Below the pieces are notes generated by a model, which worked only from the letters and a program-made list of their open reading frames with translations, was not told the DNA's origin and searched no databases. The translations under genes and the position numbers were made by a program. From Bigelowiella natans CCMP2755 (taxonomy: Eukaryota > Protista > Cercozoa), in assembly GCA_000320545.1 (NCBI GenBank), contig ADNK01000423.1, positions 1 through 64,000 of the forward strand: a stretch of DNA of 64,000 bases. The letters run 5' to 3'. Positions 4,929 to 44,199 of the stretch are shown here, piece by piece (position 1 is the first letter of the stretch; every line of letters starts with the position of its first letter).

Positions 4929-4961
<33 letters not shown>

Positions 4962-5161
4962 TCATCGTCGATGAAGGATGTATGGGATTAGTGTGCATGT
5001 ATTCTTGCTTGCTAGCAGAAACAATGAAAAATACATCAAATCAACGATGAGCTTGACCAACAATATCATACGTCTATAATAATACAAAGGTTTCATTTGG
5101 TTCGAAGAATGAATAGAGCAGAAGCAACTTCCGGTACTTCATGTTAACATAGTTGTAGCTC

Positions 5162-5196
<35 letters not shown>

Positions 5197-5796
5197 TATC
5201 ATTACAAGCATATGTACATGCATTGTGCTGGCGCTGTGTAGCGAAGGGATTCAAGAAAAAAAGAGGAGTCGTTGAAAGAGGAATCAGTCCCCAGGATGAT
5301 GTTGTCTCTTCTGTGACAGGATTTGGAAGAGAAGGTTTGTTATCATAACGATGATAAAGATGATGATGATGATGATGATGATACGTTCATCGTAAAAAGT
5401 AACCATTTGTCATCGTCCAGGTTTCTCACGAAATCAAAACAGGCAAAATAGGTTCTGCCACTTTGTATGTTGTTCATGATTAAGTAGTTAGTTGATTATA
5501 ATATTGCTATTCTTACACGTCAAGAAATCTCTCACATCGCTATCTGTGTGAGTAATACTACTTTGTACTTGGTGTATGTTGTGAATAAGCTTTATATTTG
5601 ATTTATTCTGAATACTCAGCCTCCTTCTACTAATGAATATATTGTGGCCAATCAAACTTTCTTTCAATCACACAATCAATCCATCCATCAATCAATCAAT
5701 CGACCAATCAGTGATATGGCACTAAGGAAGAAAGACAGCAACATGAGTATCAACAGTGATTTGAATGAGGTATTTTCGTCATTGTATTCAGTATCC

Positions 5797-5833
<37 letters not shown>

Positions 5834-6300
5834 CGTCACGTGTGTGTGTGTGTGTGTGTGTTATATGTGCAGGAGCATAAATTTGGAGGAGGTGAATCAT
5901 CTTCCAAGCAGCAGTATGAAACAAAAACCAGTCGAATATCATCATCAATTCCAGCAGCAGCAGAAACTTCGATGATAATCTCTGATACCATCAGTCGTCG
6001 TGGTGGTGATTCTATGGTGGAGGTGGAGGTAGTACATACTGTTATGCTTTTAATATTAGTAACCCTTCTCCTAACCACTCTTTGCAAACGTATCACAATG
6101 GGGCGGTAGTAGCACATGACACACATTTGAAGAAATGAATGATTCAATTCATGAAATATCAGATGAAAGAAGCCAAATCAAAAGATGATAATACTGCGGT
6201 AAGAACTTCACATATCACAAACCATCGTAATGCATAAATATCTGCACGGGTATGTGTGTGCGCGCATGTGTGCGTGTGTGTGTATGTGTGGTGAAGATTC
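60..6300 (+). CDS. Probable many-exon gene (membrane protein?) in microsatellite-rich introns; structure unresolved
   Basis: Short high-complexity islands flanked by AG/GT, e.g. LYFSIIGLIFAFAAAPHGAANIAFS (~1490-1562), LRRGKMLFFGFELESQISFYEP (~3812-3880), LFTRGMSKEDVDKQ (~4717-4758), LLVLLSVALVSLLVAIFS (~4868-4923). Confidence 0.25.
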
Positions 6301-6899
6301 TCTTTCAGCATTACTGATAGTTGTGAGCATACATTAGAGTGTTATGGAAAAAGTCGGTAAAATGTGGAGGAAAAACAGATCAACATCGCTCATGGTCAGA
6401 GATAATCTAGATTTCGACTAATCACATCATAACAAAGCAAAATGTGCATGAAGAACCACATTTATGTTCAATATAACACACTAGCAGTTTCGGTTGATAA
6501 TGCAAAATCGATTGGAAATTGCTGATGGTGGTGGTGGTGGTGTGTTGGCATTATCTTTTATAGGGTGTACTACATGGCCTGACAGTTGTTTATGTGTGGC
6601 AATATCTCGTGTATTATGAGGTAATAATGTGCACAAAAAAGAAGATAAATGATGATGTCTTCAGCATTAGAACACATGAAAATGTGGCTGGCGCACAGCA
6701 CAAGTACATTTTCTAATGAATTGACGACACACCCCTAAGATGTGTCTATCACAATAACATTATTTTTGGTTTTGTCGTATGCTTTAACACAGACGACCAA
6801 CAAATAGTAGTAGTAGTTGTTGTTCCAATGAGCAGCAGCGAAGTTACTTCCGTGAAGTTCATCAGCACTCTATCTTATGCAGCTGTAAGATGTCATCAA

Positions 6900-7640
6900 G
6901 CACGCAAGTTGTGACAACATGTAGCAAGCAATTGAAAACAATGAAACTTGCACTAATGATGGTGATGCCAGCACAGCTAGATAGAATGACAAGCTATCTA
7001 TCTAGGTTGCAGGTGTAGTGCAAGATGTCCACATCTATGCACATCTTGCGCAATGACGATCGACTACTGTTTTGCCCATCTAGCCATCGTTATCATCGAG
7101 AATTAAGTGTGTAAGTGGCATGACCATCAACATGGCGGCGCAAACACGACATCTGGATTGATTGATGCTTGTATCATCGTGCAGGCCTAAACTAGATGAG
7201 CGCACTGGGCGTGCGTGCAATGCATCTCACTAGCTTGGACATCTAAGACTCGCTGAACTAGTGAAGCATGCATTGCTAGCTAGATCATGTATTGCTGCAC
7301 CTGCGTGCGCCAGCTGTGCGCCTAACAAACGCACAGTGCATGTGCAATCATTGTGTGCATGTAGCTAGATGGCTAGTTGTCCAGACACACACATTCTCAT
7401 TTCTTCAGAAAAAGTTAGTCGACACACAGCAGCTTAGTCTCATCTTAAGCCATTGTTGTTTGGATCGACCATGCGCTAACTTCACAACACTAGAACAAAT
7501 TGCAAATGCATGCAATGATGTGCATCTGAAAACTGCATGTCGATGTCACAATCTGCATTTGAAAGCGGTGTCACATCATGCTTGCTGATGTTTTGAGCAA
7601 TGATGAGTTCTTTCTCACGTTGTTCCATTCCGAGTCGTCA
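6900..7640. other. Partial TpA-depleted intergenic tract
   Basis: TG/CA-rich, and remaining TA is mostly in CTA, TAG or CTAG. Lies at the 3' end of the kinesin gene. Confidence 0.6.
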
Positions 7641-8251
7641 TTCGCCATATTCTCCATCCCGCTAGAAAATGAATTAATGTTTCTCAATGATGATGACGAA
7701 ACTTGACCCGGCTGTTTTTCAACAGAAATTTGTGTTCTGTCAGGAGTCATGGCCATGTTACCAGAACTCTGATAGATAGCAGTGCAGTTTCATTCAGATG
7801 GAATACCATAATAGTTGTTCTGACTATTTTTTCATGTCGGTGTGTGTTTTCCAACTGTACTACCAACATTTAAAAAAAAATGCTAAAAACGTAGAAAAGC
7901 ACCGGTATAATGTGCACCTTTGAAACTCCACTGAAAAGTCTCCGTGTTGTTTTCTTCGCTGATGATGCAGATCCTTGGGGTAAGGAATCAAGCATGGATT
8001 CTGAACGTCGACTCAATCTAGAGGAGCGCGACTTATTCCGCATTGGCGTCCTAAAGCATTGATCAAGATGACGAATAATGAACGATAATACTACAACGTT
8101 GATTATGATGATGATGATGATGATGATGATGATCAACTATTGTTCCGAAGTGTATTGAACAGTAAGAAAGCAGATAGAAGTAATATGGAGTAGTGAGTAT
8201 TTTATCTTATCGAATCACAGTCAGATATGATTGATTAAGCAAGCATAATCT

Positions 8252-8293
<42 letters not shown>

Positions 8294-8480
8294 TATGTAA
8301 AATCTTATATGTAGTATGTGGAGGCCTTCCTCCTCGTCCTTCTCCATTTAATAATATTTACCGCTCTGACACACTACCCACAATCTACCTGGGTGGCTGT
8401 GCATCTTCTGATAGTGCTCGAGAAAAAAGCTTAGAGTTGTAAACAGTAGTGTTAGTCTGTATTTCTCTTCGCCCCCCCCC

Positions 8481-8521
<41 letters not shown>

Positions 8522-9300
8522 TCTCTCTCTTTCTTTCTCTCTCTCTTAGGTTTTGATAAACCTTCTTCCTGCTTGATTTGCGGTCTGTCTTCGACTAAAA
8601 TATTGTGATGAGCGGGTAAGGTGAATGAGCGAGGGAAACATCTGTTAGATGGTGTGCAGATGTAATGGAAGTAGAAGAAATCTTATGCCTACTCTATAAT
8701 AGATACTTGACAAATTAACAACGAATCACTTCATTTTAGTATGTTTTGTTGTGTAGTCTTTCCTCTTCTTCTTCTTCATAATCTTCATCTTCATCTTATT
8801 TATATTTTTGCTTTTCTTCCTTTGTGCTACTAGTACTACTACTGCTACTACTACACTACTATTACCCTGCTCTCTGAGCGGCCAAGCTCGACATTACGAA
8901 TTAATGCCGCAAATTCTATTGAACGCTTTGTTTCCTTGTTAAAAAGTAGGTAAAGTGTACATGCGTATGGCGTGTATCACCACCACCAGCACTATCACAG
9001 CGGCTATTAATGTGTGTGGTACAGCTTCATACCTCATAGTCCCTCTGTCTTGGAGATAGGGTTGATATCATGATAGTCTGCGACTTGTTCTGCAGCAGCA
9101 GCAGCAGCAGCAGCAGTACAAAAGGAATAGCGTTGTTGTTGTTGTTGTTGTTGTTGTATTATATAACATTAGAAGAATTCAATCTGAGGACAACGCTATT
9201 TCATCGAAATATTACGCTATTCCTTCCTTTCTTCACTCACGTTTACCCCAAATACACATTAGGCAAAACGGTATTGTCTAGATGTGCGTTTTGTGTCAAT

Positions 9301-9337
<37 letters not shown>

Positions 9338-9820
9338 CAATTGATATACGTGTTGTACATGTATACTACAACCGTGAAACACCACCATGCGTGCTTTCAT
9401 TGTGATGATGATAATGATGATAAAAAAGGTGAACAAAACCACATGCCGTACCAAAAATGCCTTCATTAGGAGCGTTGTTAGCTTCGAGTCTCTAAATGGC
9501 ACGTGTTGTTGTTTCCGTGCTAGAGCAAGCAATACCTGAGTAAAGAGAGAGAGAGAGAGGAGGGGGTGAGGAGGGGAATAGAACGAGGATAATCGGAGAC
9601 AAAAACAAATGATATTGTTGTTTTTACTAGCTACTGTAAGCTACTACCCTATTACATAGCCCTTAAATTGTAGTAAGTAACAGAAAGAGAAGGAAGGAAA
9701 TATGATAGTACTACTAGTAGTAGTAGTATTATACCCCTCTGAAAGCCGAGATAGATTTATTTATAGAACCTACAAAGAGAGAGGGAGGAGGATGAGGAGG
9801 AGGAGGAGGAGGAGAGGGAG

Positions 9821-9868
<48 letters not shown>

Positions 9869-10741
9869 CAGTAACGAGCATTCAGCTACGGGTCTGCATA
9901 GTATGGTCGCACTACTCGATGACCGCATCAACTAGCAATTTCTCTATTGCGAGTGAAGAATTTAAGAGCGAGTGGAAGCATTTACTTACAATGGGATAGT
10001 AGCATTATTATCATCATCATTATTATTATTATTGTTATTATTATTGCTGTTTTTGTTGATATTATTAGTAGTGGGAATGTAGCAGTACCCGTTTGTGAAA
10101 TAGACGCCTGGCGCATCTTCTGGATGTTTCCACTGTTAATGGACTAATCGTACGACACCAACCAATAAATGTACGGAGAAATGAATGATATATGGTGAGA
10201 TGTATTGATGATGCGTATGAAAGCATTCTATCTTGTTGTTGTTCTTCATCTTGCACCCCGTGAGTTAGATGATCCTGGTTGGTATTATCGTCGAGACGTT
10301 CGGAACCTTGTAATTGAATGATGATGATCATCTAAATAATGACATATTTGTTATTGTCCGCAGTGTTGCAGTGAGTTTACTTACCAGCCATATCTATCAT
10401 CATCAATTGGCCCTTTACGCGGCGACTAGATTCAGCATGAGCTCCTATCACCTAATCAACGAAGAAGAACAACAGCACCTTATATACTGTGAACATCAGC
10501 ATCAACAATATACTGTTCAATAATACGCAGATTATACACGCACATAACACACTTGCATATTCTATTTCTAGAATCAGCAATTAGAAAAATGTGCGAGCGG
10601 CTGCTGCAAATTTTGAGTGAGTTTTATACGATGCATATCAGGTCACATTGCTGCTACTACCGACACCATGATCACTGCGTGTGATCGAGAGCTTCTTTGA
10701 TTCATAAGAGTGCGGCCTGTTTGTGGTAATAATGCCACACA

Positions 10742-10808
<67 letters not shown>

Positions 10809-11803
10809 AGTGTGTTTGTACATATCTAAAGTATATATATGTTATATTTGCGTGTGTGCCATGTATTTTTGCTTGGTCAAGAAAGGGCAATCTGCACATA
10901 CATCAACATTAAATGACAAGGAAGAACGCTCTACATAGGCATTGACATTAAATCACATATAAACTTAAACAGTAATATGTCACTCATCACTTGCAACTGA
11001 GTAGTATCACCATCAAGGTGAAAATCAACCAATGTGGTTTATATAATAAGTAATGATAATTCGCAACAATGTAAATCATCAAGTTGTGCGGCCATTCCAA
11101 AAGAAGGTACAAAACAAGAGTATGGGGGCATTATTCAGTCTTAAATCGTCATATTCAGTGCACAAGTTGTAGTATTTGGTTTTCTTGAAAGTATAGACAA
11201 GTACAAGATAGCAAGCAGCAGCACGATAGTAGCAGCATTTATCATCATCATCATCATCATCATACCTTCTGTCCTATGCTTCATCGACTTTTTGAGGAAG
11301 GAGATAGCATCTGCTGAAGTCTTTATAATCTCCTACTCGGAAGGAGGAGGGGGGGAGGAGAAGGGATTGGTTGTTGTTAGCACGAGGAGAGAGATAATAC
11401 AATGTCAAAACACTTTACATCGTTGTTGGTTTTCTCTTTCCTTACTCTCCTCCCCTCCCTCATGGTAGCATCATTCTCTTTTGGACCCTTTTGCGCCTAC
11501 ATTTACCTCCTTCAGGCCAGGAATAGAGACGTCATTATCCTTGTTGTTATAGAGCTTTAAACATCCTAATATATCGTTGCATTCATCAAGAAACGGCAGC
11601 AGTAGTAGTAGTAGTAGCGGCAGCAGTAGTAGAATTAGTTTAATGGAGAGAGGGAGAAGTACGTACATAAAATAGTTAAAGATATGCACGAGTTTTACCA
11701 CTACTATTACTGCTAGCACCAGATTTCGAATTTCGATCAAGGAGATCATACACCTATGTTTTATGCATACATTTTGAATAGCATACTGAGCTTCATGGTC
11801 CAC

Positions 11804-11842
<39 letters not shown>

Positions 11843-13359
11843 TTAGTAGTAGTTTTGTAGTGGAAGTGGCAGTAGTGCTGGACCATCGAGCAGCTAGGTA
11901 GCTAGAGGCATCATGCATGAAAGACATCGCAGATAATAGGGTTGAATGTGTTTCAAAGATATTAGCCGATATATCACCGAGTTAATTTTTGTACGCACAT
12001 GACAAATAAAATGAATGGTTAGAAGATTAGTGAATGCCTTGGTAAATTGTGTACTACTTCCATATTATGCATCTTATCATCATCATCATCCATCAAACAG
12101 CTTAATCACCATCGATTACTAACACACACCTGCTCCTTGTAGATCTCTACTGCACTCGCTACGAGCGTGTATTTCCATCCAACCTCCTTCCGACTGGAAA
12201 AATAGAGTAATAGCAATCATGGTCATAATCATAATCATTGTAAGTAAAATACTACTACTACTACTACTACTACTACTAATGTTCTAAAGCAAGTCAGCTG
12301 TGAGAAAGAGAAGAAAGCACGAATATATCTATATATATAGAAAACAAGATGAATGAACTTTGATGATGGCGATCATGATCTAGTGCTAATTAGTACGTGG
12401 ATTCATTCGATAGACCATGCGTATCATCTGCCAAAGAAATGTTGTAAATCTTGTTCTTATACCTTTCGATAGTCGTTAGGTAGCCGTTGATTGTGCGTAG
12501 CATCAAACCACACTTTTCAGGGTCCTTAGAAGAAGAAAAAGCACAAGAACAACGGAAGTAAGTGTGAATTTAAAGTAAGTGTGTGTATGTGCATAGACAC
12601 GCTAGGCTGGTAACAGCAATGACTTAAGTGTTTTGTTTACAATTAGTGATAATACCTGCAGATCCCCTTCCATCGTGAAGGTCTTGCCTGATTGATATAG
12701 TGGGATTTTAGTTCAATTATTTTATTTGTTCATTGCTGTTTTCTTCTTATTATCATTAATCAGCTAATGACCAAATATAAACAAGCCCGAATAAATGGGT
12801 CGATGTTTAGCAGCAGCAGCAAGAGGAGGATGAGGAGGAGGAGGATGAGGAGGAGGAGGACAGGGTAGGCAGATTTCTATCTCTTCCTTCTAGACGATGA
12901 TTTGAAAAGAAAGTACAATTATGACATTTCCTCCTCCTCCTATTAGTTAGTACTAGTACACAACTATCGCAAGGAAACTAACACACACAATCCAACCATC
13001 TTCTGATGACTCTGCAGCCAACTAGTACGTACTACTACCACCACTCTACTACTACTACTACTACTACTACTACTGCTGCTACTACTACCGGAAGCTGTTT
13101 GTCCGTATGCATACACACAGACGTCATATCTTTAAATCGTAAAAACAACAATTAACGTTATTGTTGATTCTTCTTAATATTGCCATATTTATTATCGACG
13201 ATATACTACCCATCCATGCAAGTAAGAACGGTCTTCTCAAATTCCTTGAAAACTTCCTCCTGTTTGCACAGAAAAAAGAAGCCAAGCTCAGAGACATGTA
13301 AAAGATGACCTCGAACCTTCCCCCCCCCCCACCCCCCCCACACATATATATACTACTAC

Positions 13360-13399
<40 letters not shown>

Positions 13400-13568
13400 G
13401 TTATTATTATAAAGAACAACCTGTGTTTTTGAAGGCCCAAATGCCCTGGTAAGGTGAAACGACTCTTGGTTATACTGAATACCTGATGATGATGATGATG
13501 AAGATGATGACGACGACCATGATTGTGGGAGAAATCAAAGGGGTTGGAAATCGCTCTCCTTCTCTCCC

Positions 13569-13648
<80 letters not shown>

Positions 13649-14627
13649 CTGCTTGCTGTTAGTGCTTGTCCTCTAATCAATGAATACCGTCGCTCATAAC
13701 AGTAAACTTAGCTTCTTCATCGATCTTATATTCCTCAGGTTTCATTGGTCGAATGCGAGCAAAGACACGAATATTGCCTTTTGATATTCTACAAGTACAA
13801 TGAAACATCATAATAACACAATATTAGATAAATGACATATAATACTACATTTGTAGGTAAGGACTGAATTCCCCCCTGCCCTCCTAACCCCCTTCCTCGG
13901 AACAACAAAATGCATTGATATAAAAAACGGAAGAAGTATTTTGAGTAAGGAAGTTGTAGTGCAGTAGTTCTTCTTCTTCTTCTACTACCACATCATGACT
14001 ATTCCTCATTACCATCACTACTTGTTGTTGTTGTTGTTGTTGTATGACCTGATCTCATCGATCATGTTCTTTCGCTGTTCAATTTCACTCTCTAGCTTGA
14101 TTTGCAGTGTCTATTGATTGTGAGGGGGGGGCGGTTCTTAGAACAGGACTTCTAGGTTGGAATGAGATGTCTTTTGGATAGCAATAAAACTTATACATCA
14201 ACATAAAAGTAGGTAGTTATCGGTATTTCTTTCTTCCCAAGCAATCAATAACAATGAAATCATTTCCTCGTTGTATATTCTCGCAACAACATCTCTACTA
14301 TGTTTGTGTTTGTTTTGCTAAGAGGCCATTGCACATCTCTGTTTTAAGCATGTGTTTATTTGCAATGTTGCTTTTCCTCCTTACGTCAGATCGCCTCCGT
14401 AATGCGACATTGTATTTCTTATTCTATTATGAATTGAGATTATCACCAGCAAAACAAGAAGACTGTCAGAATAGGTTCAAAGGAGGTATCATCACTGATT
14501 GCACACTGCTAGATAGAAGGCAAGATCATCGATCGACTTTGGATATTAGTACTATTTTGGAAAGCAATATGTTGTCGTTGGTCAGGGTTTGGTTGTAGGG
14601 AGTTTATTTATTTTGAGGTGATGATGA

Positions 14628-14667
<40 letters not shown>

Positions 14668-15137
14668 TATATATGGGTAGTAGTAGTAGTAGTAGTAGTA
14701 GTAGTTGTAGTAATAGTAGTCGTACATCTGCAATAGCCTCTAATATTCGATTGCATTCAATAGAACACGCAGCCTATAGATTATTATGTATTGCATGATT
14801 CCTTAGACGATAGATATTCCAGAGATATACACACGTGTTGTGTGTGTTTTGTGTTGTGTCCATGCTAAGGTACAGACAGCAGTCAATTTTTCTTTCGCAC
14901 TTTGACTGTTACAAGCTGTGGTTTTATTTTATACAGAACAGCAGCTGAGTCATCATCACCATCATCATCATCATCGTCATCATCATCGTCACCATCATCA
15001 TGCAAACACAAGCTATAAGCATCATCATTGTCCCATTCTCTTTACCAATACCTTATGCCGATCGAATTGCTTTATTGCATGTACTCTGAGTCTTTTTATC
15101 CCATCCGTTAAGCTGGAATGCTAGTAGAAGTATTGAC

Positions 15138-15174
<37 letters not shown>

Positions 15175-16150
15175 ATGATAATGATTATGTGCACCAATAG
15201 ATGTAGTAGAGGCAGCATATTCAAGCACAAGTATCTATTGTTCTTCTTGTTTCATTTTCGCTTCCTCTCCTGACCTCATCATCATCATCATCATCGTCGT
15301 CATCACCATTAAAACCTCACGAATATGTGGTGATACTACTACTGCTGCTGCTACTACTACTACTGCTACCTTTTGTAGAAGGCGGGTTGCTTTCATGAAC
15401 ATTGTGTGTGGTAGGATTGGATGTGTAATTGCTGCTTGATGCCTTCCATTCTCGTTCTTTCTTTGCTGCATTCGTAACTGGGAGATATCCTTTCTCAACT
15501 GATGAGAAAGGGAGGACAACATCTTACTGAATCGACTCAATGCAGTCACCATCATCAGTTTTATTTAGCATCACTACTCTCACCTCACGAATACTTTCCC
15601 TGAGTTTGTTTCCTGCGTGATAATACAACAACAACGATAAGAAAGATGGCTTGAGCAAGCGTGTATGTATGGTTAAATAGCTGTTAGGCATCAAAAAGAC
15701 GATGTGACGGTGTTATGTGCACTCGTGAATCTCCATTTTACTTAATCATATCCATCACATCTCGCTATCACATCTATGTAAGATACTGTAGTAGCATACA
15801 TTATCTTCTAATTTGAAACATCATCATCATCACCATCATTATCATCATCGTCCGTAATATGACCTTCAGCTTTTTGCACACTTGCAAGTTGCTTCCAACC
15901 TGTTAAAGCTCTTCCTCTGGAATGTACCTTCTGAGTGATGACAGCACGTAGATTTTGGTCGTACACTATATGTATTGTCATCGTCATCTTCGTCGTGTGG
16001 TCAGTCATATATGATATTTTACATAATAATCTCTGAATCTGTGGTGTGCAGTAGACAAACACGTCAAAATTGGCGTTAAATCAATATTTCAGCAGCTTGC
16101 AGATTCCTCTCCTTTTTCGGTACTACCTCCTCTTCAAATGCCTGCATATG

Positions 16151-16185
<35 letters not shown>

Positions 16186-16364
16186 TGTGTGTGTGTGCGT
16201 GATATCTGTTTATATATTTATATGATATTCAATATATACGCTTGGTTTTATGTCAATACAATCATCTTTTACACGAACAAGTAGCAATCATTGTGATGTG
16301 GTGTTTCTTCTCTTTCCAAAAAAAGCATTCTTAAGGGGAGGGGGGGGGTGGTTTGAAAAATATC

Positions 16365-16401
<37 letters not shown>

Positions 16402-16602
16402 TATTGTATATCTTCACCTTTTGTAGCTCTTTTAGCTGTGTTTCCAGCAAGTTTTGCCTCTGACCCTCCTCAATATAAGCTTTGGAATAAAATCTCTCCT
16501 TCCCGCCTTGAAGCTCCTCCTCCTTGTCATAATCTTGCTGCTGCTGCTGTCCCTAATTGGGGTTTCGTTTTAGAAGAATATAACATCATTATTATACACA
16601 TA

Positions 16603-16664
<62 letters not shown>

Positions 16665-16688
16665 GAGAGAGAACCTATATGTACGTAA

Positions 16689-16732
<44 letters not shown>

Positions 16733-17168
16733 GTGTATACACGTGTATGAGCTCTGAAATTGTGTTAAAATACACTTCGAATTGAGACGATGATGACAGT
16801 GATGTTGCTGTTAATGGTTTCACCTGATGCTCTTGTAATCCTATAGGCATCATCGTGCTACTTTTCTGATGCTGTTCCTGCTTATCATCTTCCTTCTTCT
16901 CTTTAGTAGAAGCAGCATGTAGTATTGTGCGAGTAGAGAGCTTGTTTGTTTCTGATCTAAGTGTCCTTATCTCACTCAAAAGCGTATCAATTTTAGAGTC
17001 TATCTGCAATCTCATGACAAGTTCGCTCTCCCCAAGTCCTCTCCCTCTTCCCATAGCATCATCACCGTCATCCCCCCTTGTGGGAGTGGGGGGCGGGGGG
17101 GCAGGATCATTCGTATAGACGACGGTATTGTCATTAACGGTATTGAGATCATTAGCGGTATGGGCGCC

Positions 17169-18981: not shown

Positions 18982-21024
18982 ATGAAGAGCGCAAAGAATG
19001 AACCTTCTTCATGGGGGGTAGGCTTCATCCATCGAGATCCTTTTTTATATTTCCTCTATATGAACAACAAACTGCTTCATAATTTTAGATTCTACGTAAA
19101 ACCACACCCCGATTCATGTGTCGCACGTGAATTCGTTTTGTGTAGGAATCTATGCGCCAATACCGCGAAAAATCTTCGTCCACAGACACGGGAGCAGTGT
19201 ATAGTGTGCCCACACGGTTTAACCATGAGAAGTTGAGATCAATGGAGCAATTCGATATAATCCGCCAAAAATTTAAGGATCCGGTGAAAGAAGAGCTTTT
19301 CTCTCAGAGTTTTGGGGCAAATCTTGAAATGACACGCTCAAAAGCTTTGGTTGGTTTTTATCTTCGCATTACAAAAAATAATCAGTTACTTTTCATGATG
19401 GTGCTTTGTTTGTGCCATTACCAAAAATATTGCATATTACTTAGTAGGAATCAGGGAAGTTGAAGCAAAGTATTTAGGAAAATGCAAATACAAGCATTTT
19501 GCCACATTTGTATAGCATTAGACAAAATACCGTACACACTCATTCTGTTGTTTCTAAAAAGGAGAAATACGATAAAACTGACCGTGGCTTCCATATGCTG
19601 AGCAACAAAGTCACTAGTCCCATCAAAGCCAATAGTGGAGTTAAGACGCGAAAGCCTATCGACAGCAAGCATATTACGCGTGTTGGCTACAACATAGTAA
19701 CAAATCAAGACCGAGTTACCGGGTAACCTTCTACGCACAATCACATGTGCTCTCTCTTACACACTCTCTTTCACACACATTTTCAGTAAAAAATGGTGAA
19801 ATTGTAAGATTTCAACATCTCACTTGACACTACTGTCTTTTAGAATGGTAGTTGATCCTCAGCTACGTACAAGTGTTGGGTTACGTGCACAAAAGGACTA
19901 CAGACACTTTGATATTGTCAGCAATAAATACGTAGAGAATCATGACCAGGTAGTACCGGCAGTAGTATTTATACACCACACATTTCCAGCATTCTATACT
20001 GAATCTTTCACACTGATTTTAATCTTTGCCCGCTCTGGATCATAGCATTTTGAGGAGGATCAAGCCGCATCTCGGAAGATTGCTGCCGAGAAATTCCATG
20101 TGAAAAGGGACTTTGATCTCATCAAAGGAGCCCATTATGACAAGGAAAAGGAAGAAAAATTTCTTCGGTGAGTAAGCAAACTAAATTTCAACAATGGATT
20201 TTGCATAAAATCAAGACCTTGCTAAAGTTGAGGTTTTTATTTTTGATTGTGTACAGAACCCGTGAGGAAAAAACTGCAGACGACAACATGACGATGTTGA
20301 ACCGCTTGCCATTATCGTAATATCCATAATCAAATCTTTCTTTCTAAATTGAAACACATTATCGTCTGGCCAACAAAACGATGAAGTTGGGTAGGATCAT
20401 GATCCCTTAACACTTTTCGATTGTTTGTCCAGGTATAAAGTTAGTGATGGAATGCTCTATAATATAATCAATGGCGATGTGTATCAGAAAGGTCCACAGA
20501 TTTAAATTTCACATCGAAGAGAATTAATATATGTATCGTCTACTATTTTTCTCTCAGAGCAACTTGGTCATCACGAACACTTGCTTGATCGCCGTCGGAA
20601 CATCCATAAGAGAAACTACAAAGTGCAGAGCGAGCATAGGGTATCGCATTTAAGAGTAGCATTTTGCTTGTGTAGGAGTTATGTTTTTCTTACGACGAAA
20701 ATTATCCACCCATATTCTCGAAAATACAGGCCAGGGGAGACCGTGAACAGGATATTTCTGAAAATAGGAGAATGGCGCGCGTGTCCTATGTTAGATATCA
20801 AGGTGAAAGGTAAGAGGAAGAATGTCAAATTCCTTGAGAAAAGTTGGAATCTGTTGAAACGCATTTATTATGAGAAAGTAGATCGTAAAGATGATCTCGG
20901 CAATAATTTTTCGATCAGAAATCGAGGATTCAATATTGTAAATCAAGGCAAAATCAAGAAGTCATCGCAGCCTCACAAATTTTTCCCTAAGAAGAAGCTC
21001 TCAGTCTGGGAGGTATGTGACTGA
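18982..21024 (+). CDS. Multi-exon protein with repeated [YF][ND][IL][IV] motifs, possibly a ciliary microtubule-inner-type protein; boundaries approximate
   Basis: Short GT-AG introns. Exon peptides QFDIIRQKF, GYNIVTNQ, HFDIVSNKY, DFDLIKG, YNIING, RGFNIVN. Divergent from the kinesin gene. Confidence 0.5.
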
Positions 21025-22111
21025 ATCAGGCCTCACAAAAAAATGCCCGGATATCATCATGTTCTTTCTTTTGTATTTGTTCATTGCGCTAATAATATTT
21101 TGGTCTACATGTTCCATCTAGTCCATGAAAAAAACGTAAAAGCATCATCAAGAATGTCAGCAGCACCTTTCGTGCATGGAATGGAAGTGGAGAATGGTGA
21201 CTGTTTTCACATCCAGTGTTTTGAAGGGAATCGATATTGATGAATGGTGTGCATGCAATGCATTGCAGTGATGTCTAAATGTGCATTAGGACAATGTGAT
21301 TGGTGTGTTGCATGGCATTGCTGGTCTGTCACGTTGAGTTAGCACGAGCATGGCCAGTGAGCAAGTTTGCGCATTTTCCACAATTCAGCAGATTCATCAT
21401 GGCATTGAGCCACATGCTAGCATGTGTGTGCATGCAAAAACGATCGTGCCCACTTCTTGTCTTCATGATCGATCTTTTCGATCTCCATTCGTGCATGACG
21501 ACCAAGCAGCAGCAATCGCAACGCACCACAAGCTAGCTTGCACAACGCAACGAGCACATGCGCGCGGTCCTCTTCCAGCCAATGCGCTAGAATGATCTGC
21601 TGCGGCTGCAATGCCATGGGTTGACTGCAGCTTGTGCAACACTGTCGTCGATCATTGAGTGCATCATAGCATTGACATGTGGCACACATGCTGATGCCGC
21701 TGCACATCGCAGCATTGCAGAGCATCAGATTGGCGCAACGCTAGCCTGCTAGCAACAATGGCGAACAATCACAATCGTGCATGCTAGCATGCCAGCATGC
21801 GCTGCTGGGCTGGCGTCTCCATGCATTGTGATCGAACTGTCCGAATGAGTGATGAAGTGTTCCCAAGCCTGCAGCAACGTGTGGACGAAGAAGCAGAGAA
21901 GCACCACCAGAATTGCTCAATTCCATGCACCTCGCTCCCTGACGCCGTGAACGAGCAATGAGGAGTGATGTTACGAAGCAAGTGCAGTCGCATCAACAAG
22001 ACCATGCACGCAAAGAGAGCTTGCAGAGACAAGACTGGCAGAGAAAGACACGTGTGAAGACATTGGTGCTGTTGCACGCAGCGTGCACACGCACAGAGAC
22101 TCAAGTCTCCA

Positions 22112-22437
22112 TGTAGCGCGTACTACTACGCGAGCACAAGTCACGTGCGACAACAAAGGGGTTGTCGCGGATATAGAATATAGATAACGTAGATATTAAT
22201 ACAGTATAGGCACGTGGGTTCCGGCGGGACTCATGGCAGCACACCGGAAGTGTGCTGCCCCACGTGCGGCGGCATTCGCGAAAGCTTCGCGAATGATTAC
22301 GCAGTGCACGATTTAATAAAAATGTGATCTTTAATGAAAATAAACATAACTCTTCAAAAGGAAGCAAACGTGCCTTCCCCCCCCCCTGCCTACTTGTGCA
22401 CGTAGCGCCTCGGCCTGTGAACACCTTACGCGCAACA
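22112..22437 (+). repeat. 5' LTR (326 bp)
   Basis: Identical by eye to 27502-27827. Imperfect 11-bp terminal inverted repeat TGTAGCGCGTA...TACGCGCAACA. TATA-like AT-rich block and AATAAA inside. Confidence 0.95.
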
Positions 22438-22442
22438 ACCTT

Positions 22443-22460
22443 TGGCTTCCACACACGGGA
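22443..22460 (+). promoter_or_regulatory. Primer-binding site (tRNA-complementary)
   Basis: TGGCTTCCACACACGGGA, 5 nt downstream of the LTR. Its reverse complement ends in ...GGAAG-CCA like a tRNA 3' end. The isoacceptor was not determined. Confidence 0.7.
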
Positions 22461-22476
22461 AACGATTTGACTAACA

Positions 22477-25400
22477 ATGTTACAGCAGCTAGAAGAACAG
22501 CAGGACTTTGGCTCGCAGGCCGTACAAGGGCACGAGCAGAAACAGGAAAGGAAGGGCGATACGGACGCTAAGGAAGGAGGAGGAACACCTCCACAGGCAC
22601 CGCCGGGACCAGCACCCGGGATTAAGAAAGCAGATGCAGCAGCAGAGGCACTGGAGAACTTCTACGAGGCGGACGACGAGGACGTGGCCGCCGAAAGCAA
22701 GAAGGTCGTAATGGCATTACGAGCCTTGCGACCCAGGGCGAGCAACTACGCCAAACTGAAAGTATCGATAGAATACAAGTATCAGACACATGATGTTTGG
22801 GCAGCTATCATGCAGGACATCATGGATTACGAAGCAGACTTACCTCCAGAGTGGGCAGCTTTGTTTAGGAACGACGGGGGTCTGGGCGCCTCGCGGGGGA
22901 CGACCCAGAGCACCGTCAAGCAGCAGCAGCCGGTACAGCGGAACACCCAGTTCATGTCTGTTAAAACAGCACCGGTTATGATAACGAAATACAACGGGAA
23001 AAGAGGTGAGGCAAGGAGGTGGTGGAAGAACGCTAGGAGTATACTCTGCGACTTTACCCCTAACCCCACCGAAAACGACAAGCTCAAATGGCTAGCTATA
23101 ATAAAGCAAGCCATGGACCTTTACGAGACAGGCAGGACCCGGATCAGGCAGCTGGAGAAAATACACACTACAGTTAGTGGGCTACGAGACGTTGAGGCGA
23201 TAATGAAGGCTTTTGTAAATGAACAGGATGCTAACTCCCTACCCCAGGCTATTAGAAAATACAGAGCAATGATGCAGCATGAGAGAGAACCTGTTAGAGA
23301 CTTTGCCACGCGCTTCCAGGATATGATCGACGAACTACATGATTTTAATTACAACACAGGTGATGATCAGGCAAGGTTTGAAGAGTTCAAGTTAAAGATA
23401 AAGGAATCCACTTACGTTACGGAGAAAGGCTACACCACGATGGAGGCAGCAGTGCGGGCTATATCCCTACGCGAGCAGGAGCAGGACCGCAAGTTTACCA
23501 GCCCTAAGGTACCTGGCATAGGAAACATTAACGCTATTAAGCCGCAGCGAGACTGGTACAAGGACAGGGAAGGTAACCGACGTTGCGGATACTGCTCACG
23601 TAAAGGGAAACACACCGCTAAAGACTGCAGAGACAGGAAAGAAGGACGACCCAGGATGACGATCAGGCAGCTCAACGAACACTACGAGAAGTTAAAGAGA
23701 AAGAAAGGCAGAGGACAAGGATATAACAACAGCAAATGGCAAGGCAGCAACAACGGGAAGAACAATAAATATAAGAACAAGAAGCAGAACAGTATCAATG
23801 CTATACAGCAGCAGATAAACGGAATATTAGATCACCTTAAGCAGGCGCCGACGAAGACAGCAGTACCAGCAACGCAGGACCAAGACAAGCCCATGACCCT
23901 AGACGACATAAAGAACTTAGGAGTATGCAACATTAATGACGAAGACGCTAACAGGACTATCAAAGTTGCTATGACCAAGGTTAAAGTTAAAGACAGCTAC
24001 GGAGACTACAAGAAACTACCTGCCCTTTGGGATAGTGGCAGCATGCCGAAGTCCTTCATAAGCCTAAGCACAGTAAGAAGGTTAGGACTATTGGATCAAG
24101 TGACTAAGAAAGAACGTAAATATGCTCAAGCAGACGGAAGCTCTTCTATGAAGACCGTCGGTGAGCTAATGCTAAAGCTACAGATACCTGGCAGCGACGC
24201 GGAGACCCAAATCAAGACCCGAGTAGCCATGACTTTATCCATGGAACTACTCCTCGGACAGGATGCCCTAGAAAAATTAGGGGGGATCATATCATTCTAC
24301 AATCACAAGATATACTATGCTAAGTTACCAAAGAAGTCAGGCAGGACCATCAGCCAGAACATGATACGGCTTGACGAGTGGACCTCTGAGTCAAGCGTTA
24401 ATGCGTTAGAGTTTATGGACCTAGCGGACAACAAGCTACCTACACCTACCGAGCTACGGAAGAAGAACCCCGGCAAGACCATCCGACAGATAACGGAGCT
24501 ACTGGACAAGACCCCCCCAGCTGATGATTGGGATATCGACAAAGGCAAAAAGTACATTGATAAAATATTAAACGAGAAGTACTCTGACATTACCAAGCCG
24601 ACGACGAAGCCCTCCAGCAAACTTACCCCAGTAAAGATCGAGCTAAAGGAGGGATACGAAGAGTGCATCATCAATGACCCAGAACATAGGCGACCGGAAG
24701 CGGACTGGGAAAAGATGGAGTGGCAGATCAATGAATGGGCAAAGGAAGGGAAGATAGAGCCAAGCAACTCACCATGGAACGTGAGACATGTGCTAGCTAA
24801 GAAACCTACTTACCCTTTCTTCCGCCTGGCGCACAACTTCATCCGCCACAACCGAGTAATAAAGAGAATCCAGACACCTACACCAAGGATAGATGACGTT
24901 ATTGAACACGTCATAGGATACAAATACTACTCTTCCCTAGATAAAAATGAATCATACATGCAGACACCCATCCACAAAACCTCCCGCCCCATTACCGCGT
25001 TCTCCAGCAGGCACAGGAAGTGGCACTTCGTCGTATTCCCTTACGGCCTAAGCATATCAGGGGATGCGTTCAGTAGTCAGAACTACAGGGCATACACACA
25101 TGATGGGATGGCGTCTGTGTTGTGGGTGTTTGTGTTTGTGTATGTGGATGATGACATAATATGTACCAACACAGTCGTCGCTCAGATCTTCCTCCTGGAA
25201 AATATATTTATTAGGTTTGCACACTTCGGTTTTACTATTAGACTGCAGAAGTGTACATTCCTAGCTACAAGAATCAAGTGGTGTGGATATTACCTGGAGC
25301 AAGGCCGCATCACCCCAAACCCCGAGAAAGTAGCAGCACTACAGCAAGCCCCTAAACCTAAGAATGCAAAGGAGTTAAAGTCATTCTTGCAGACTGCAGC

Positions 25401-27450
25401 TTGGATACTACGTAGGTTCTCCCCTACCTACGCTAGGACTGCAGCTGCTTTTACTACTGCTTACCGGAAGGAGAACTCTGTAGGCCTCAGCTTCGCTAAG
25501 GTGTGGGCCAAGGCTGGCCTTGATGCCCACTTCGATAACCTAATAAAGTTATGCAGCAACACCCTATTGAATGCTAAGCTAGACACTACTAGACCAGCTA
25601 CCCTATGGACAGACTGGTCTAAGCTAGGTATGGCTGCTGTACTTACCCAAGACCAGCAGATCATACGGGTGTGGGGCAGGGCCTGCACAGCAGCTGAGGC
25701 CAAGTACAGCCCTACAAAAGGAGAGTATAAAGCCATGACTGAGGCGCAGAGGAAACTAAGATACTACCTGCTGTCGGTGCCCAGCTTCACCTTAATGACT
25801 GACCACAAGCCCCTCCTAGGCATCGACCGCAAGCTCGAAGCGCCTAACGATGAGTATGCAGCTATGAGGGCGGACACGGAAGAGTTTAGGGACAAGAGGA
25901 CAGTGGTCTACGCACCAGGAGACAAGCAGCTTGCTGACTATTTCAGCAGGCTGTTCGAAAAGAAAGTCCCTACCCAGGTCACCCCTATGGTTAACGCGAT
26001 TACCTTCGAGGACGGCGACTTCCTGCCTGAGCCAGAGGAGCTCCAGCACCTTCAAGAACACCTGGATAAATACAAACACAAGCATGAGGTACTTAGTGAT
26101 AGGATATATGTATACACTAATAATGTTAGGCGTACCTACGTGCCACGGCGGACCAGGGGAGCCCTTCTCTTTACCGCCCATGGACCTGCACACGTAGGAG
26201 AAAACCATATCACTGCTCTACTCTACCATTACTACTGGCCCTACAAGCTAAAAGAGATAAGGACATACCTGCGTGGCTGCAGGTGCTCCAGCTTGAAGGC
26301 GGCAGGTGTCGCCACCAAGGAGTCCAGCAAGAGCCGTGCATCTAAGAAAATCAAAGCAAGGAACTTCTTAGATATCGTGCAAATTGATGTTTATAAGTAC
26401 GATGGCTATCACTACCTTACCTTCGTTGATGTGGCCACTGGAAAGTGCTGGGTTAAAAAGATTATCAAGGTCAACGTTGCTAAGAAGAACAAAGGCTTAT
26501 ATAAGCAGAGGCTTACTAACTGCTACCGTACCTGGGAGTCTGAGCTCCAGGCTATCCCTGATGAAGTTAGCATAAACAAGATACCAAAGAAGTTACATGT
26601 GGATAATGAGACCTCTCTTCTACAGCTACCACACCCTAATATTGATGCCTCACCTGTATACTATGCCCAGTCCAACTCCAAGGTAGAGCGACTCCACCGC
26701 ACCTTGGCCAACCTAAGCAGGATAAATAGCACCACACCAGACAAGATACAAGGGTTAGTAAACGACACCTTCACGTCTGGGGGAGGTATCAAGGATAAGG
26801 AGAGGGAAGAAGGCGACGACAACGACGACGATACCGAGAGCGAAGACGAGAAGGTCCCGTACGATGGCCGAGTTCTAAAGGAAGGACAGTATGTTAGGGC
26901 CAAGGTAAATCTGAGATCGAGAAATAAACAAGACCCCTTCTGGGGTGGCGTTGCAAAGGTTACCGAGAGGAAGGGGAGGAAGCAGTACTACATCTATGAT
27001 GGGAACAGGGTCACCTTGCGCCACATCAGTCACCTAAAGAATTATGATATCGGTGAGAAGCTCCTAGAGGATGTTAAAGTAAACCCTACTGTGTGGGAGC
27101 GAGCAATGCCTTGTTTAGGACCCCGACCTAAGTTCGATGTGGAATATGGAAACAATAAGGTCAGGGTGAACGACGATTGGCGCATGAAGATTGTCTATCT
27201 AGGCTACCCTGGATTACGAAATATGGAGAGGGTAGCTATGAAAATAAAGGACGGAAAATATCAGCTACTCTACCTAGCTGTTCCCGACTTACCCTTTGAG
27301 CACTGGTATAAGGTCCTGGGGGACCTTGATGCAGAGGGCTGGTATGGACACGAACCTAAGGACGAAGGTGAGTTCTGGGTAAGCGACAAAGGAGATAAGG
27401 TTAGAGAGGAATCTATTACCTGGTGGTTGGTGAAGTTCCGAAAGCGATAA
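22477..27450 (+). CDS. Gag-Pol polyprotein, 1657 aa (Gag with zinc knuckle, aspartic protease, RT, RNase H, integrase, C-terminal N6-adenine-MTase-like domain)
   Basis: Knuckle CGYCSRKGKHTAKDC; protease LWDSGS; RT LDKNESY, FPYGL, YVDD; RNase H TDWS and TDHKPL; integrase HGPAH..CRC, VQID, HVD, KVE; GPY/F-like DPFWGG. Confidence 0.96.
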   Translation: MLQQLEEQQDFGSQAVQGHEQKQERKGDTDAKEGGGTPPQAPPGPAPGIKKADAAAEALENFYEADDEDVAAESKKVVMALRALRPRASNYAKLKVSIEYKYQTHDVWAAIMQDIMDYEADLPPEWAALFRNDGGLGASRGTTQSTVKQQQPVQRNTQFMSVKTAPVMITKYNGKRGEARRWWKNARSILCDFTPNPTENDKLKWLAIIKQAMDLYETGRTRIRQLEKIHTTVSGLRDVEAIMKAFVNEQDANSLPQAIRKYRAMMQHEREPVRDFATRFQDMIDELHDFNYNTGDDQARFEEFKLKIKESTYVTEKGYTTMEAAVRAISLREQEQDRKFTSPKVPGIGNINAIKPQRDWYKDREGNRRCGYCSRKGKHTAKDCRDRKEGRPRMTIRQLNEHYEKLKRKKGRGQGYNNSKWQGSNNGKNNKYKNKKQNSINAIQQQINGILDHLKQAPTKTAVPATQDQDKPMTLDDIKNLGVCNINDEDANRTIKVAMTKVKVKDSYGDYKKLPALWDSGSMPKSFISLSTVRRLGLLDQVTKKERKYAQADGSSSMKTVGELMLKLQIPGSDAETQIKTRVAMTLSMELLLGQDALEKLGGIISFYNHKIYYAKLPKKSGRTISQNMIRLDEWTSESSVNALEFMDLADNKLPTPTELRKKNPGKTIRQITELLDKTPPADDWDIDKGKKYIDKILNEKYSDITKPTTKPSSKLTPVKIELKEGYEECIINDPEHRRPEADWEKMEWQINEWAKEGKIEPSNSPWNVRHVLAKKPTYPFFRLAHNFIRHNRVIKRIQTPTPRIDDVIEHVIGYKYYSSLDKNESYMQTPIHKTSRPITAFSSRHRKWHFVVFPYGLSISGDAFSSQNYRAYTHDGMASVLWVFVFVYVDDDIICTNTVVAQIFLLENIFIRFAHFGFTIRLQKCTFLATRIKWCGYYLEQGRITPNPEKVAALQQAPKPKNAKELKSFLQTAAWILRRFSPTYARTAAAFTTAYRKENSVGLSFAKVWAKAGLDAHFDNLIKLCSNTLLNAKLDTTRPATLWTDWSKLGMAAVLTQDQQIIRVWGRACTAAEAKYSPTKGEYKAMTEAQRKLRYYLLSVPSFTLMTDHKPLLGIDRKLEAPNDEYAAMRADTEEFRDKRTVVYAPGDKQLADYFSRLFEKKVPTQVTPMVNAITFEDGDFLPEPEELQHLQEHLDKYKHKHEVLSDRIYVYTNNVRRTYVPRRTRGALLFTAHGPAHVGENHITALLYHYYWPYKLKEIRTYLRGCRCSSLKAAGVATKESSKSRASKKIKARNFLDIVQIDVYKYDGYHYLTFVDVATGKCWVKKIIKVNVAKKNKGLYKQRLTNCYRTWESELQAIPDEVSINKIPKKLHVDNETSLLQLPHPNIDASPVYYAQSNSKVERLHRTLANLSRINSTTPDKIQGLVNDTFTSGGGIKDKEREEGDDNDDDTESEDEKVPYDGRVLKEGQYVRAKVNLRSRNKQDPFWGGVAKVTERKGRKQYYIYDGNRVTLRHISHLKNYDIGEKLLEDVKVNPTVWERAMPCLGPRPKFDVEYGNNKVRVNDDWRMKIVYLGYPGLRNMERVAMKIKDGKYQLLYLAVPDLPFEHWYKVLGDLDAEGWYGHEPKDEGEFWVSDKGDKVREESITWWLVKFRKR

Positions 27451-27493
27451 AGGTCTAAGGGAATAAGGAAGGAAGGAAGGAGCAACGTGACTT

Positions 27494-27501
27494 GGGGGAG
27501 G
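27494..27501 (+). promoter_or_regulatory. Polypurine tract
   Basis: GGGGGAGG abutting the TG of the 3' LTR. Confidence 0.8.
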
Positions 27502-27827
27502 TGTAGCGCGTACTACTACGCGAGCACAAGTCACGTGCGACAACAAAGGGGTTGTCGCGGATATAGAATATAGATAACGTAGATATTAATACAGTATAGG
27601 CACGTGGGTTCCGGCGGGACTCATGGCAGCACACCGGAAGTGTGCTGCCCCACGTGCGGCGGCATTCGCGAAAGCTTCGCGAATGATTACGCAGTGCACG
27701 ATTTAATAAAAATGTGATCTTTAATGAAAATAAACATAACTCTTCAAAAGGAAGCAAACGTGCCTTCCCCCCCCCCTGCCTACTTGTGCACGTAGCGCCT
27801 CGGCCTGTGAACACCTTACGCGCAACA
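27502..27827 (+). repeat. 3' LTR (326 bp)
   Basis: Identical copy of the 5' LTR, directly preceded by the purine tract GGGGGAGG. Confidence 0.95.
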
Positions 27828-28247
27828 ACCATGGGCTAGAGAGGTTCTTCATTGATTTGAGAATTGGCAAACTGGTTGTTTGTCTTTGAGGCAAGACGAC
27901 TAGCTGTGTTGTGACGGCGACGCAATGTGTGAACTCTGACAATGAATCTCCTGAAGGCCATGCTAGCATGTCGACACGATGGTCCACGGTCGGGTCGTCC
28001 GAAGGAGCACCCTGGCAGGAACCAGAAATAATGATGAATTTTTAAATGTTGAGTGAATTGCATTTCTTTTTTGATGGCGACACGAGAAAACAACAGTGAA
28101 AAGCAAACTGACACCTGAAGAACATTTAGACCACCCTAATATGTGGTGCGACAACTCCAAAATCCTGTCGCTTGTGAAAGAATCTCGAACAAAACAAAAT
28201 ATCTTCCGCTATCCTCACAACGTTATCTCACAGAAAATTCCATCGAG

Positions 28248-29320
28248 ATGTCCTCGCAGGGCCTTCCAACAGGAGGTGCTCAGGACCGAGAGGGCTCCGA
28301 TCGCTACTTCGACAATCTCGATAATGTCAAGGATGTTGACGAGACAAAGGAAGAAAAAGGCGATGAAAAGGAAGAGGTTATCACAAAGAAGCTAAAAACA
28401 TATGGTGGTACTTACCCTCACTTGAAATTATTAGGAAAAGAAACCCTCTCAAGGACTTTTGCGCCAGTTCGATTTCCGAAAGGTACCCTAAGATATTCGC
28501 GTGTTCAACCAAAATCGGTCCCATGATCGTTTAATGGTTCATCATGTTCAGGGTGCAATGCCTGAGAAGGCACGAGTCGTTGGAGGAAAGACGAACATCA
28601 CCGTTGAACACGATAAAAGTTCGGTAAGTTCAATGATAGAGAATACCTTCCTAATAAATCTTTTTAAAACATGCCTATCCTAATCCACAGAGCGTAATCG
28701 TTGACCCTGGCTCTCATATTCTGCTGGACTTGGAGAATATGACGGTGAAAGTCATTTTAGAATGGTTCTGCTGTCACGATATGACGTTGTTCCGATCATT
28801 TAACAGCCAAATCAAAGTAACGATATGATGAACGATTTTACGCTCACGATGGACATCAAGCTAAACAAGCTTCCCAAGAAGAACTTCTTTCTTGTTTCAT
28901 TGAATGACAAACAAGACCGTTCGATCATCTCGCCAGGTTTCTTTGTCATTTTTGTTCGAAGTCTGTGTAGCATCTGGATATTTACACAAATGGACTTATC
29001 CATTTACACAAATGGACTTATCTTTCTTCGAATTAAACCTTATAACAGGGGAAATCCAAGTCTATGACGACGGCGGTGTTGGGTACTTTGGCATTCGCGG
29101 TCTTACGAAAATCAAGCCCGGGAAATGGACTCGTGTGGTCATCACCTCCGGTGGCGGGTTCCAAAGCGGCACCCGTAAAGTTACAACCTATGTTAATGGA
29201 AAGAAATGTGCATCTATAGACAAGCCAATTCTAAATACAAAGGTATTCGACTTTGATGAAGTCTCCTGAAGATCTAAAAATATTTTCATGTGCTTGCATA
29301 GAGAGCCACATTTACACGTT

Positions 29321-44121: not shown

Positions 44122-44199
44122 TTCACCTCCTACTTTCGGCATCGTTTACACAAAGTGAGGGCTGGCGAACATGATGTACATGGTTTTCTTGTACTGATC

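Follow-up and report, generated by a model that had tools for sequence, protein, structure and literature searches.

A young Ty3/gypsy-type retrotransposon family of Bigelowiella natans is associated with TpA-depleted DNA

To characterize the surroundings of a long terminal repeat (LTR) retrotransposon of the chlorarachniophyte Bigelowiella natans CCMP2755, we analyzed a 64,000-nt stretch of contig ADNK01000423.1 (positions 1 to 64,000, hereafter the window) together with other genomic copies of the element. The element is a Ty3/gypsy-type LTR retrotransposon with a single open reading frame (ORF), which ends in a domain of predicted Dam-like fold, and it is bordered by DNA poor in the dinucleotide TpA (TA). 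An earlier note on this DNA had to rely on that one insertion; the TA deficit at insertion sites was found to hold across the family, in 24 independent insertions. The deserts bear the signature of the TpA to TpG or CpA hypermutation described in B. natans. The explanation that we consider the best overall, and to which we give about an even chance, is that a young element integrated into a tract that had already been erased, with integration preference as the most likely cause.

Flanks were obtained from 30 LTR loci, corresponding to 24 independent insertions, and compared with 2150 background windows of 200 bp covering 224 kb (20 arbitrary contig starts and the window without the element). 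The nearest 200 bp of the insertions showed a median of 3 TA (rho 0.27), compared to 10 TA (rho 0.74) in the background (Mann-Whitney p 5e-10; 1e-8 after GC matching), and 54% of the insertions but only 6.7% of the background windows had 3 TA or fewer. The expectation of the earlier note that the flanks of the family are TpA-depleted more often than random DNA was thus confirmed. Pooled rho increased with distance, from 0.19 at 0-50 bp through about 0.35 up to 300 bp and 0.63 at 400-500 bp, reaching about 0.73 at 1 kb. Flanks and background were best discriminated by a low number of TA outside CTAG (area under the curve 0.89, inverted) and a high number of TGCA (0.89). The 4-mers enriched in the flanks were TGCA (2.7-fold), CATG (2.3-fold) and TGTG/CACA (1.8-fold), and these top four are exactly the four possible products of TATA. 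TA-containing 4-mers, CTAG excepted, were present at 0.08-0.37 times the background.

Regional hypermutation in B. natans was reported to hit TpA only, converting it to TpG or CpA at approximately 6e-7 per site per generation compared to a baseline of 3.46e-10; it operates in integrated viral DNA, two regions of which were found hypermutating in real time, and TpA-poor, CpA+TpG-rich clusters have been left elsewhere, 124 of them of 3 kb or more (Mettrop et al., bioRxiv 10.64898/2026.01.13.699255). The thresholds used in that study, for a 1-kb window, are Rho TpA <= 0.43 plus Rho CpA+TpG >= 1.52. The left flank of the element (21112-22111) lies beyond both, with 0.23 and 1.88, and the right flank over 1 kb gave 0.52 and 1.13, the CpA+TpG value being below the threshold.

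The largest desert of the window contains a 420-bp miniature inverted-repeat transposable element (MITE; 49536-49956) with at least 143 candidate copies, 87-96% identical. A second copy was located at L031:904-1308, inside 1500 nt without any TA. The two copies are 38 substitutions apart and neither contains TA, whereas 6.8 would be expected from simulation (P = 2.5e-4). At 5 doublets one copy has CA and the other TG, as would be left if ancestral TA had changed independently to CA and to TG. The idea of an adenine-mutated compartment is borne out, in the sense of the published TpA>TpG/CpA hypermutation, the signature of which is seen in the MITE pair.

Some further properties of these deserts were recorded. 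The MITE has imperfect terminal inverted repeats with the common core CACAAGTCCGTCAAACC, and the summed contig depth over it in a DNA run was about 20,000-25,000, compared to about 46-110 over most neighbouring bins. The TA-free stretch around the second copy (L031:101-1600, at the start of contig G000:C3736) begins in degenerate CCCTGA(C/T)-like repeats and is possibly subtelomeric. Marine metatranscriptome RNA contigs covered the exons of neighbouring genes and not the deserts, which decides nothing.

At the element itself, the counts agreed with the earlier note, which had described flanks depleted of TA up to the LTR ends, about two dozen TA in the 326-nt LTR, identical LTRs and an intact ORF. 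The left flank (21300-22111) contains 9 TA in 812 nt (rho 0.20) and the right flank (27831-28028) 3 TA in 198 nt; 9 of these 12 TA, six on the left and all three on the right, are within CTAG. The step in TpA, from rho of about 0.2 to about 1.2, coincides exactly with the LTR ends, and about 1 kb from the element TA density is back to rho 0.65-0.68. Depletion was thus present on both sides, strong on the left and weaker on the right (Table 1), where approximately 150 nt are weakly similar to 15 other loci.

CTAG between 4-bp direct repeats, as found in both flanks (Table 1), accounted for 111 of 762 CTAG (14.6%) in a 259-kb sample, a rate matched elsewhere only by cores that consist of a repeated dinucleotide. 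Such repeat-flanked CTAG would account for the survival of CTAG in deserts. At locus L009 (G000:C1114) the 5' flank reads ACAG-CTAG-ACAG, followed by the LTR element and ACAG, the retrotransposon having reused a 4-bp target already duplicated around CTAG; a similar ACAGCTAGACAG is present beside the insertion at L021. The insertions at L003, L027, L030 and L026 adjoin simple repeats, among them purine runs, (CCT)n, (GT)n and (CA)n; those of the last two types could have been (TA)n microsatellites before erasure.

Close to the insertion point, the 30 flanks together held 3 TA in 900 nt at 20-50 bp, 14 TA in the first 20 bp, many of them in CTAG when inspected by eye, and 5-14 TA per 10-bp bin in the next 50 bp beyond the 20-50 bp zone; this subdivision was made post hoc. 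Over 0-50 bp there were 17 TA where 34 were expected. The dip was discarded as a test of local preference, since insertions inside short deserts give such a profile by construction.

Several other candidate explanations of the insertion sites were rejected. A tRNA gene was found at only 1 of the 30 flank loci, and GATC, which a Dam-like link would involve, was enriched only 1.27-fold in the flanks. The 4-bp duplication showed just a weak T..A tendency, with a central CA/TG in 7 of 21 cases, which is not distinctive. Gene orientation around the insertions, deduced from ORFs, was 14 vs 14, and spurious ORFs arising in TA-free DNA make this approach unsound. Nor do the flanks belong to one repeat family: the left one is unique, and all that the flanks have in common is a repeat of about 130 bp, located at inconsistent distances. 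A search for relatives in other organisms yielded a single contig, which held the ORF only and no flanks.

The family is large, very young and active. The LTR search returned 684 candidates, and all 40 of those scored were at least 97.5% identical. The last 136 amino acids (aa) were 100% identical in at least 150 of 347 candidate places, and many sister copies keep a 1659-aa open frame. From the 684 LTRs and 347 C-termini it follows that full copies number about 340 and that solo LTRs are few. In a comparison of six LTR pairs, four were identical and two differed at column 3 only, which was taken as an alignment-edge effect.

The C-terminal domain of the ORF had 47 homologues among 1.8 billion representatives, almost all of them ending at the protein C-terminus, and the six longer homologues with Pfam matches carry gag-protease, reverse transcriptase, RNase H or integrase domains. 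The AlphaFold2 model of the domain had a predicted local distance difference test score (pLDDT) of 95.8. Matches in the PDB were led by N6-adenine methyltransferases (PCIF1, Z 6.8; KsgA/Erm, 5-6; T4 Dam and EcoDam, 5.0), with all Z values below 8, so that the PDB evidence alone is weak; the nearest models in the ESM Atlas included eukaryotic proteins with reverse transcriptase and Dam (PF05869) and phage Dam, with template modelling (TM) scores of 0.65-0.74. These models show a Dam/DIRS-like methyltransferase fold. In a global hhalign alignment with 130 colinear columns the family motif G-[YFH]-P-G stands opposite the invariant N-P-P-Y of Dam, an equivalence that depends on agreement in secondary structure and on an alignment that is itself weak (E 0.0015, probability 6.8%); the family consensus at this place is G-[YFHRCW]-P-G. 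A DPPY-like motif, DLPF, is not conserved, most members having PELxCE there.

Pfam gave no match for 28 aligned family members, with none to PF05869 at E up to 10, and a six-frame search of the genome for PF05869 found no match either. A feature search of the ESM Atlas with the domain returned nothing, and a tblastn match in Vibrio phages, considered as a link to Dam, lies within a PriCT-2 replication protein and was attributed to chance. Presence of AMT1 in the host was statistically associated with DAM elements by Fernandez-Moreno et al. (10.64898/2026.05.21.726589); the six-frame genome search for MT-A70 (PF05063, as a proxy for AMT1) had no match, and its positive controls were also silent. 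The label of methyltransferase-like domain can thus be kept for the predicted fold; methylation is unlikely, because the NPPY catalytic motif is missing and no Pfam model detects the domain. It is a cryptic relative, probably inactive, of the domains of DAM-LTR retrotransposons (see below).

The sequence of events that we favour would begin with host TpA>TpG/CpA hypermutation erasing the tract, the element integrating afterwards. Its sister copies would have behaved alike, since they lie mostly in TA-poor tracts of a few hundred bp with abundant TGCA, CATG and CA/TG. A preference of integration for erased DNA or its chromatin is the most likely cause, and tolerance of insertions in such tracts may then have sharpened the pattern. 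The element would still be TA-rich through its youth and through the episodic, region-limited action of the mutator, without need for a shield. The Dam-like domain, its catalytic motif apparently lost, sits at the place of the chromodomain of chromoviruses and is a candidate tether or reader.

On the other hand, the association could result from retention bias only. Integration would then be near-random, without preference of the integrase or the domain, and 5.7-kb insertions would survive just in the intergenic, often TpA-erased DNA of a gene-dense and probably haploid alga. We regard this rival as a serious one although on balance unlikely. Three intergenic gaps can be delimited in the window, and each of them is a desert (21024-28143 without the element, 44121-45345 and 48950-50129). 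The background used above represents the whole genome and not intergenic DNA only; when it is limited to an intergenic share of 20-25% of the genome, the enrichment in strict deserts falls to p 0.04-0.006 and that of the rho<=0.5 class is not significant. An intergenic share of 35-50% leaves the strict-desert enrichment at p 2e-4 to 5e-6. Moreover, TA-normal DNA such as the AT-rich 17 kb with which the window begins, in which insertions would be harmless too, holds only about 4 of 25, and the family is so young that selection had little time beyond removing lethal insertions. Active targeting of integration is favoured by the effect size, the few insertions in TA-normal AT-rich DNA and the youth of the family.

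Together with the sensitivity to the background, several observations weigh against targeted integration into mutator-erased DNA. Ordinary flanks were seen at about a quarter of the insertions, and the sole copy met by random sampling, L036, also has ordinary flanks, with 8 TA in the first 200 bp. The 30 flank loci were the best-scoring LTR matches with assembled flanks, a choice that may under-represent insertions in repeats. No allele with an empty site was encountered. Being unique and free of transposable-element and viral Pfam domains, the left flank is not demonstrably foreign DNA of the kind described by Mettrop et al. (10.64898/2026.01.13.699255). Both MITE copies and the three repeat-flanked CTAG in the flanks of the element are also in desert DNA, and these other mobile traces suggest general permissiveness of deserts and not a domain-specific tether. 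As for the domain, local hhalign against eight phage Dam proteins was not significant (probability 0.7%).

The dead Dam-like domain might be a reader that tethers the integrase to mutator-processed DNA or chromatin, for example at TGCA or CATG, the palindromes to which erased TATA gives rise, or else a shield of the TpA of the element; we hold either role to be rather improbable. If the reader role were true, an active retrotransposon would find its landing beacon and safe harbour in the scars that a host defence has left in foreign DNA.

The order of events could also be reversed, with the element drawing the TpA mutator to its surroundings while being spared itself, through shielding by the Dam-like domain or through active chromatin. 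The earlier note had argued that identical LTRs place the desert before the insertion, an argument that fails by itself: one LTR-pair difference corresponds at the published baseline rate to about 4.4 million generations, and since the mutator outpaces this clock about 1000-fold, LTR identity does not give the age of the desert. Identical LTRs allow ages up to about 1e7 generations, and about 1e5 could be enough for the mutator to erase a tract. The TA depletion is also centred on the insertion point, with a boundary at the LTR ends as expected of a protected element. A desert made after insertion is nevertheless improbable. Deserts also occur without the element, and the strict ones, at about 6-7% of the sample, exceed by far what some 340 copies could make. 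Flanks are normal in roughly a quarter of the copies, the catalytic motif is missing from the domain, and the published mutator targets foreign DNA (10.64898/2026.01.13.699255). A strand bias of CA vs TG directed by the element was looked for and none was found. Likewise, none of the copies lying in deserts showed the onset of erosion as a cluster of TpA transitions. Since deserts are so abundant, the shift in TA density coincides with the LTR ends, no strand asymmetry of CA and TG follows the orientation of the element and no copy has clustered TpA transitions, the tract likely predates the insertion.

A composition artefact, in which flanks of GC-richer or coding DNA have an ordinary shortage of TpA and the family pattern is chance, is very improbable: near flanks have about 50% GC vs 45% in the background, and TA-free DNA, lacking two of the three stop codons, gives rise to ORFs of about 100 aa, but the difference persists after GC matching, rho of 0.19-0.27 is far under the 0.5-0.8 of long exons in the window, CpA+TpG climbs as TpA drops and the nine ORFs that overlap the flank tracts are devoid of Pfam domains, transposable-element and viral ones included, so that GC matching and the CpA+TpG gain refute it as far as these analyses show.

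The element was described in the earlier note as not yet eroded, and this is essentially so. It is not wholly untouched: each LTR carries three private TpA>TpG changes within 13 nt (22324, 22326 and 22336, equal to 27714, 27716 and 27726), missing from 20 other copies. The cluster may be a mutator-like or RNA-editing-like mark from the source copy or its RNA; because it is identical in both LTRs, it arose before the last retrotransposition or was homogenised later. Changes were also counted in 1.8-kb segments of 30 partial copies, with polarity assigned by per-column majority. TpA transitions occurred at 2.4 times the per-site rate of other A/T transitions (21/506 vs 24/1337; Fisher p 0.006), and TA losses exceeded gains 29 to 15, TpA transitions being only 21 of the 136 changes counted. 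These results indicate that the element is essentially uneroded; its youth and an episodic, region-specific mutator suffice to explain this, and a shield is unnecessary.

The features of the element and its flanks are listed in Table 1. The order of Pfam domains along the ORF, protease, reverse transcriptase, RNase H and integrase, is that of Ty3/gypsy (Metaviridae-type) pol, and the LTR ends, this domain order and the short duplications all fit the assignment to this type. The integrase region gave a weak match to prototype foamy virus (PFV) integrase chains. No chromodomain was found among the Pfam matches at the integrase C-terminus, where the ORF instead ends in the predicted Dam-like fold. 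Perfect 4-bp target-site duplications were present in five other family copies (TCAG, ATGA, GCAA, TGCG and ACAG). At the copy in the window the duplication is imperfect despite the identical LTRs, and the identity of the two ends runs 3 nt (ACC) past the LTR.

Table 1. Coordinates in the window of the retrotransposon, its parts and its flanks
Feature	Position	Strand	Description
LTR retrotransposon, whole element	22112-27827	+	two direct LTRs and one ORF
5' LTR	22112-22437	+	326 nt, TG...CA ends, 24 TA (rho 1.22)
3' LTR	27502-27827	+	100% match to 5' LTR; TG...CA ends
gag-pol ORF, single, intact, 1657 aa	22477-27450	+	open frame; 350 TA, rho TpA 1.14
Aspartic protease, aa 513-599	24013-24273	+	Pfam PF13975, E 0.002, under curated cut-off
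Reverse transcriptase, aa 798-939, and RNase H, aa 1018-1118	24868-25830	+	Pfam PF00078, PF17917, PF17919, each over cut-off
Integrase H2C2 zinc finger, aa 1222-1269	26140-26283	+	Pfam PF17921, E 0.0007-0.002, under curated cut-off
Putative integrase D,D,E core and SH3-like GPY/F stretch	3' of H2C2 zinc finger	+	by-eye reading of the translation
C-terminal 133-aa domain, predicted Dam-like fold	27049-27447	+	aa 1525-1657; GYPG at the probable place of NPPY of Dam
Candidate polypurine tract	27494-27501	+	purine run GGGGGAGG adjoining 3' LTR
Upstream target-site duplication, 4 bp	22108-22111	+	TCCA; downstream ACCA at 27828-27831; 3/4 bases match
Left flank, TpA-erased tract	21288-22111	.	rho TpA 0.19, rho CpA+TpG 1.89; single copy in genome
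Right flank, TA-poor, weaker than left	27828-28330	.	rho TpA 0.36, CpA+TpG 1.25 (~500 nt)
CATG-CTAG-CATG (CTAG between 4-bp direct repeats)	21413-21424; 21780-21791; 27959-27970	.	holds 3 surviving flank TA

Elsewhere in the window, a multi-exon gene on the + strand (45345-48950), with GT..AG introns of 82-425 nt, is supported by marine metatranscriptome contigs at 90-95% identity and contains an internal duplication (45898-46419 vs 46946-47473, 92% alike). Positions 1-17000 are AT-rich (GC 35-40%), with TpA rho mostly about 1, CpG rho of 0.24-0.84 and few long ORFs, a composition opposite to that of the deserts.

Two recent discoveries meet at this locus, the Dam-like domains of retrotransposons and a eukaryotic TpA-specific hypermutation aimed at foreign DNA. 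Both ingredients are known from 2026 preprints, which cover LTR elements carrying DAM domains and the TpA mutator of B. natans, and to speak of an undescribed system, as the earlier note did, was too strong. The family-wide insertion association was measured in this analysis; no report of a family-wide link between this retrotransposon and TpA-erased tracts was found in the literature. A family of about 340 copies, mostly in erased tracts yet itself unerased, makes three questions testable: the role of a catalytically dead Dam domain on an integrase; what defines the targets of the mutator, high copy number evidently not doing so; and whether mutated DNA is a safe harbour for an active element.

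DAM-LTR retrotransposons are LTR elements carrying Dam-like domains (Fernandez-Moreno et al., bioRxiv 10.64898/2026.05.21.726589). Like the B. natans element they are of Ty3/gypsy type, with a prokaryote-derived DIRS-type Dam-like domain in pol. Their domains were negative in an E. coli activity assay, and the B. natans domain is probably inactive. They were found by a DAM-domain screen and keep the Asn-Pro-Pro triplet, whereas the B. natans domain has no Pfam match and reads G-Y-P-G. Further differences are the position of the B. natans domain at the very C-terminus, after the integrase, and the host, a chlorarachniophyte (Rhizaria), a group unmentioned by Fernandez-Moreno et al., who also report no insertion-site bias (10.64898/2026.05.21.726589).

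The deserts agree with the hypermutation of Mettrop et al. in organism and in the combined loss of TpA and gain of CpA+TpG, the left flank passing the published thresholds and the MITE pair differing as TA>CA and TA>TG changes would predict. Short intergenic tracts and a link to an active retrotransposon family were not described in that work (10.64898/2026.01.13.699255). The flanks at the element are unique non-coding DNA without recognisable foreign origin, unlike the published foreign targets.

An extra module at the integrase C-terminus and strongly non-random insertions in a compact genome are shared with chromoviruses and targeted LTR elements. Chromoviruses carry a chromodomain at the integrase C-terminus, and among targeted elements Ty5 is directed to Sir4 heterochromatin, Tf1 to promoters and Ty3 to Pol III genes. 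The B. natans family differs in that no chromodomain was found, tRNA genes are nearly absent from its flank loci, GATC is not enriched and the tether is putative.

Fungal repeat-induced point mutation (RIP) resembles the B. natans process as a dinucleotide-specific regional hypermutation marking mobile DNA. RIP changes CpA to TpA and hence creates TpA, whereas the B. natans process destroys it. Since about 340 near-identical copies are unmutated, repetition alone does not trigger the process in B. natans.

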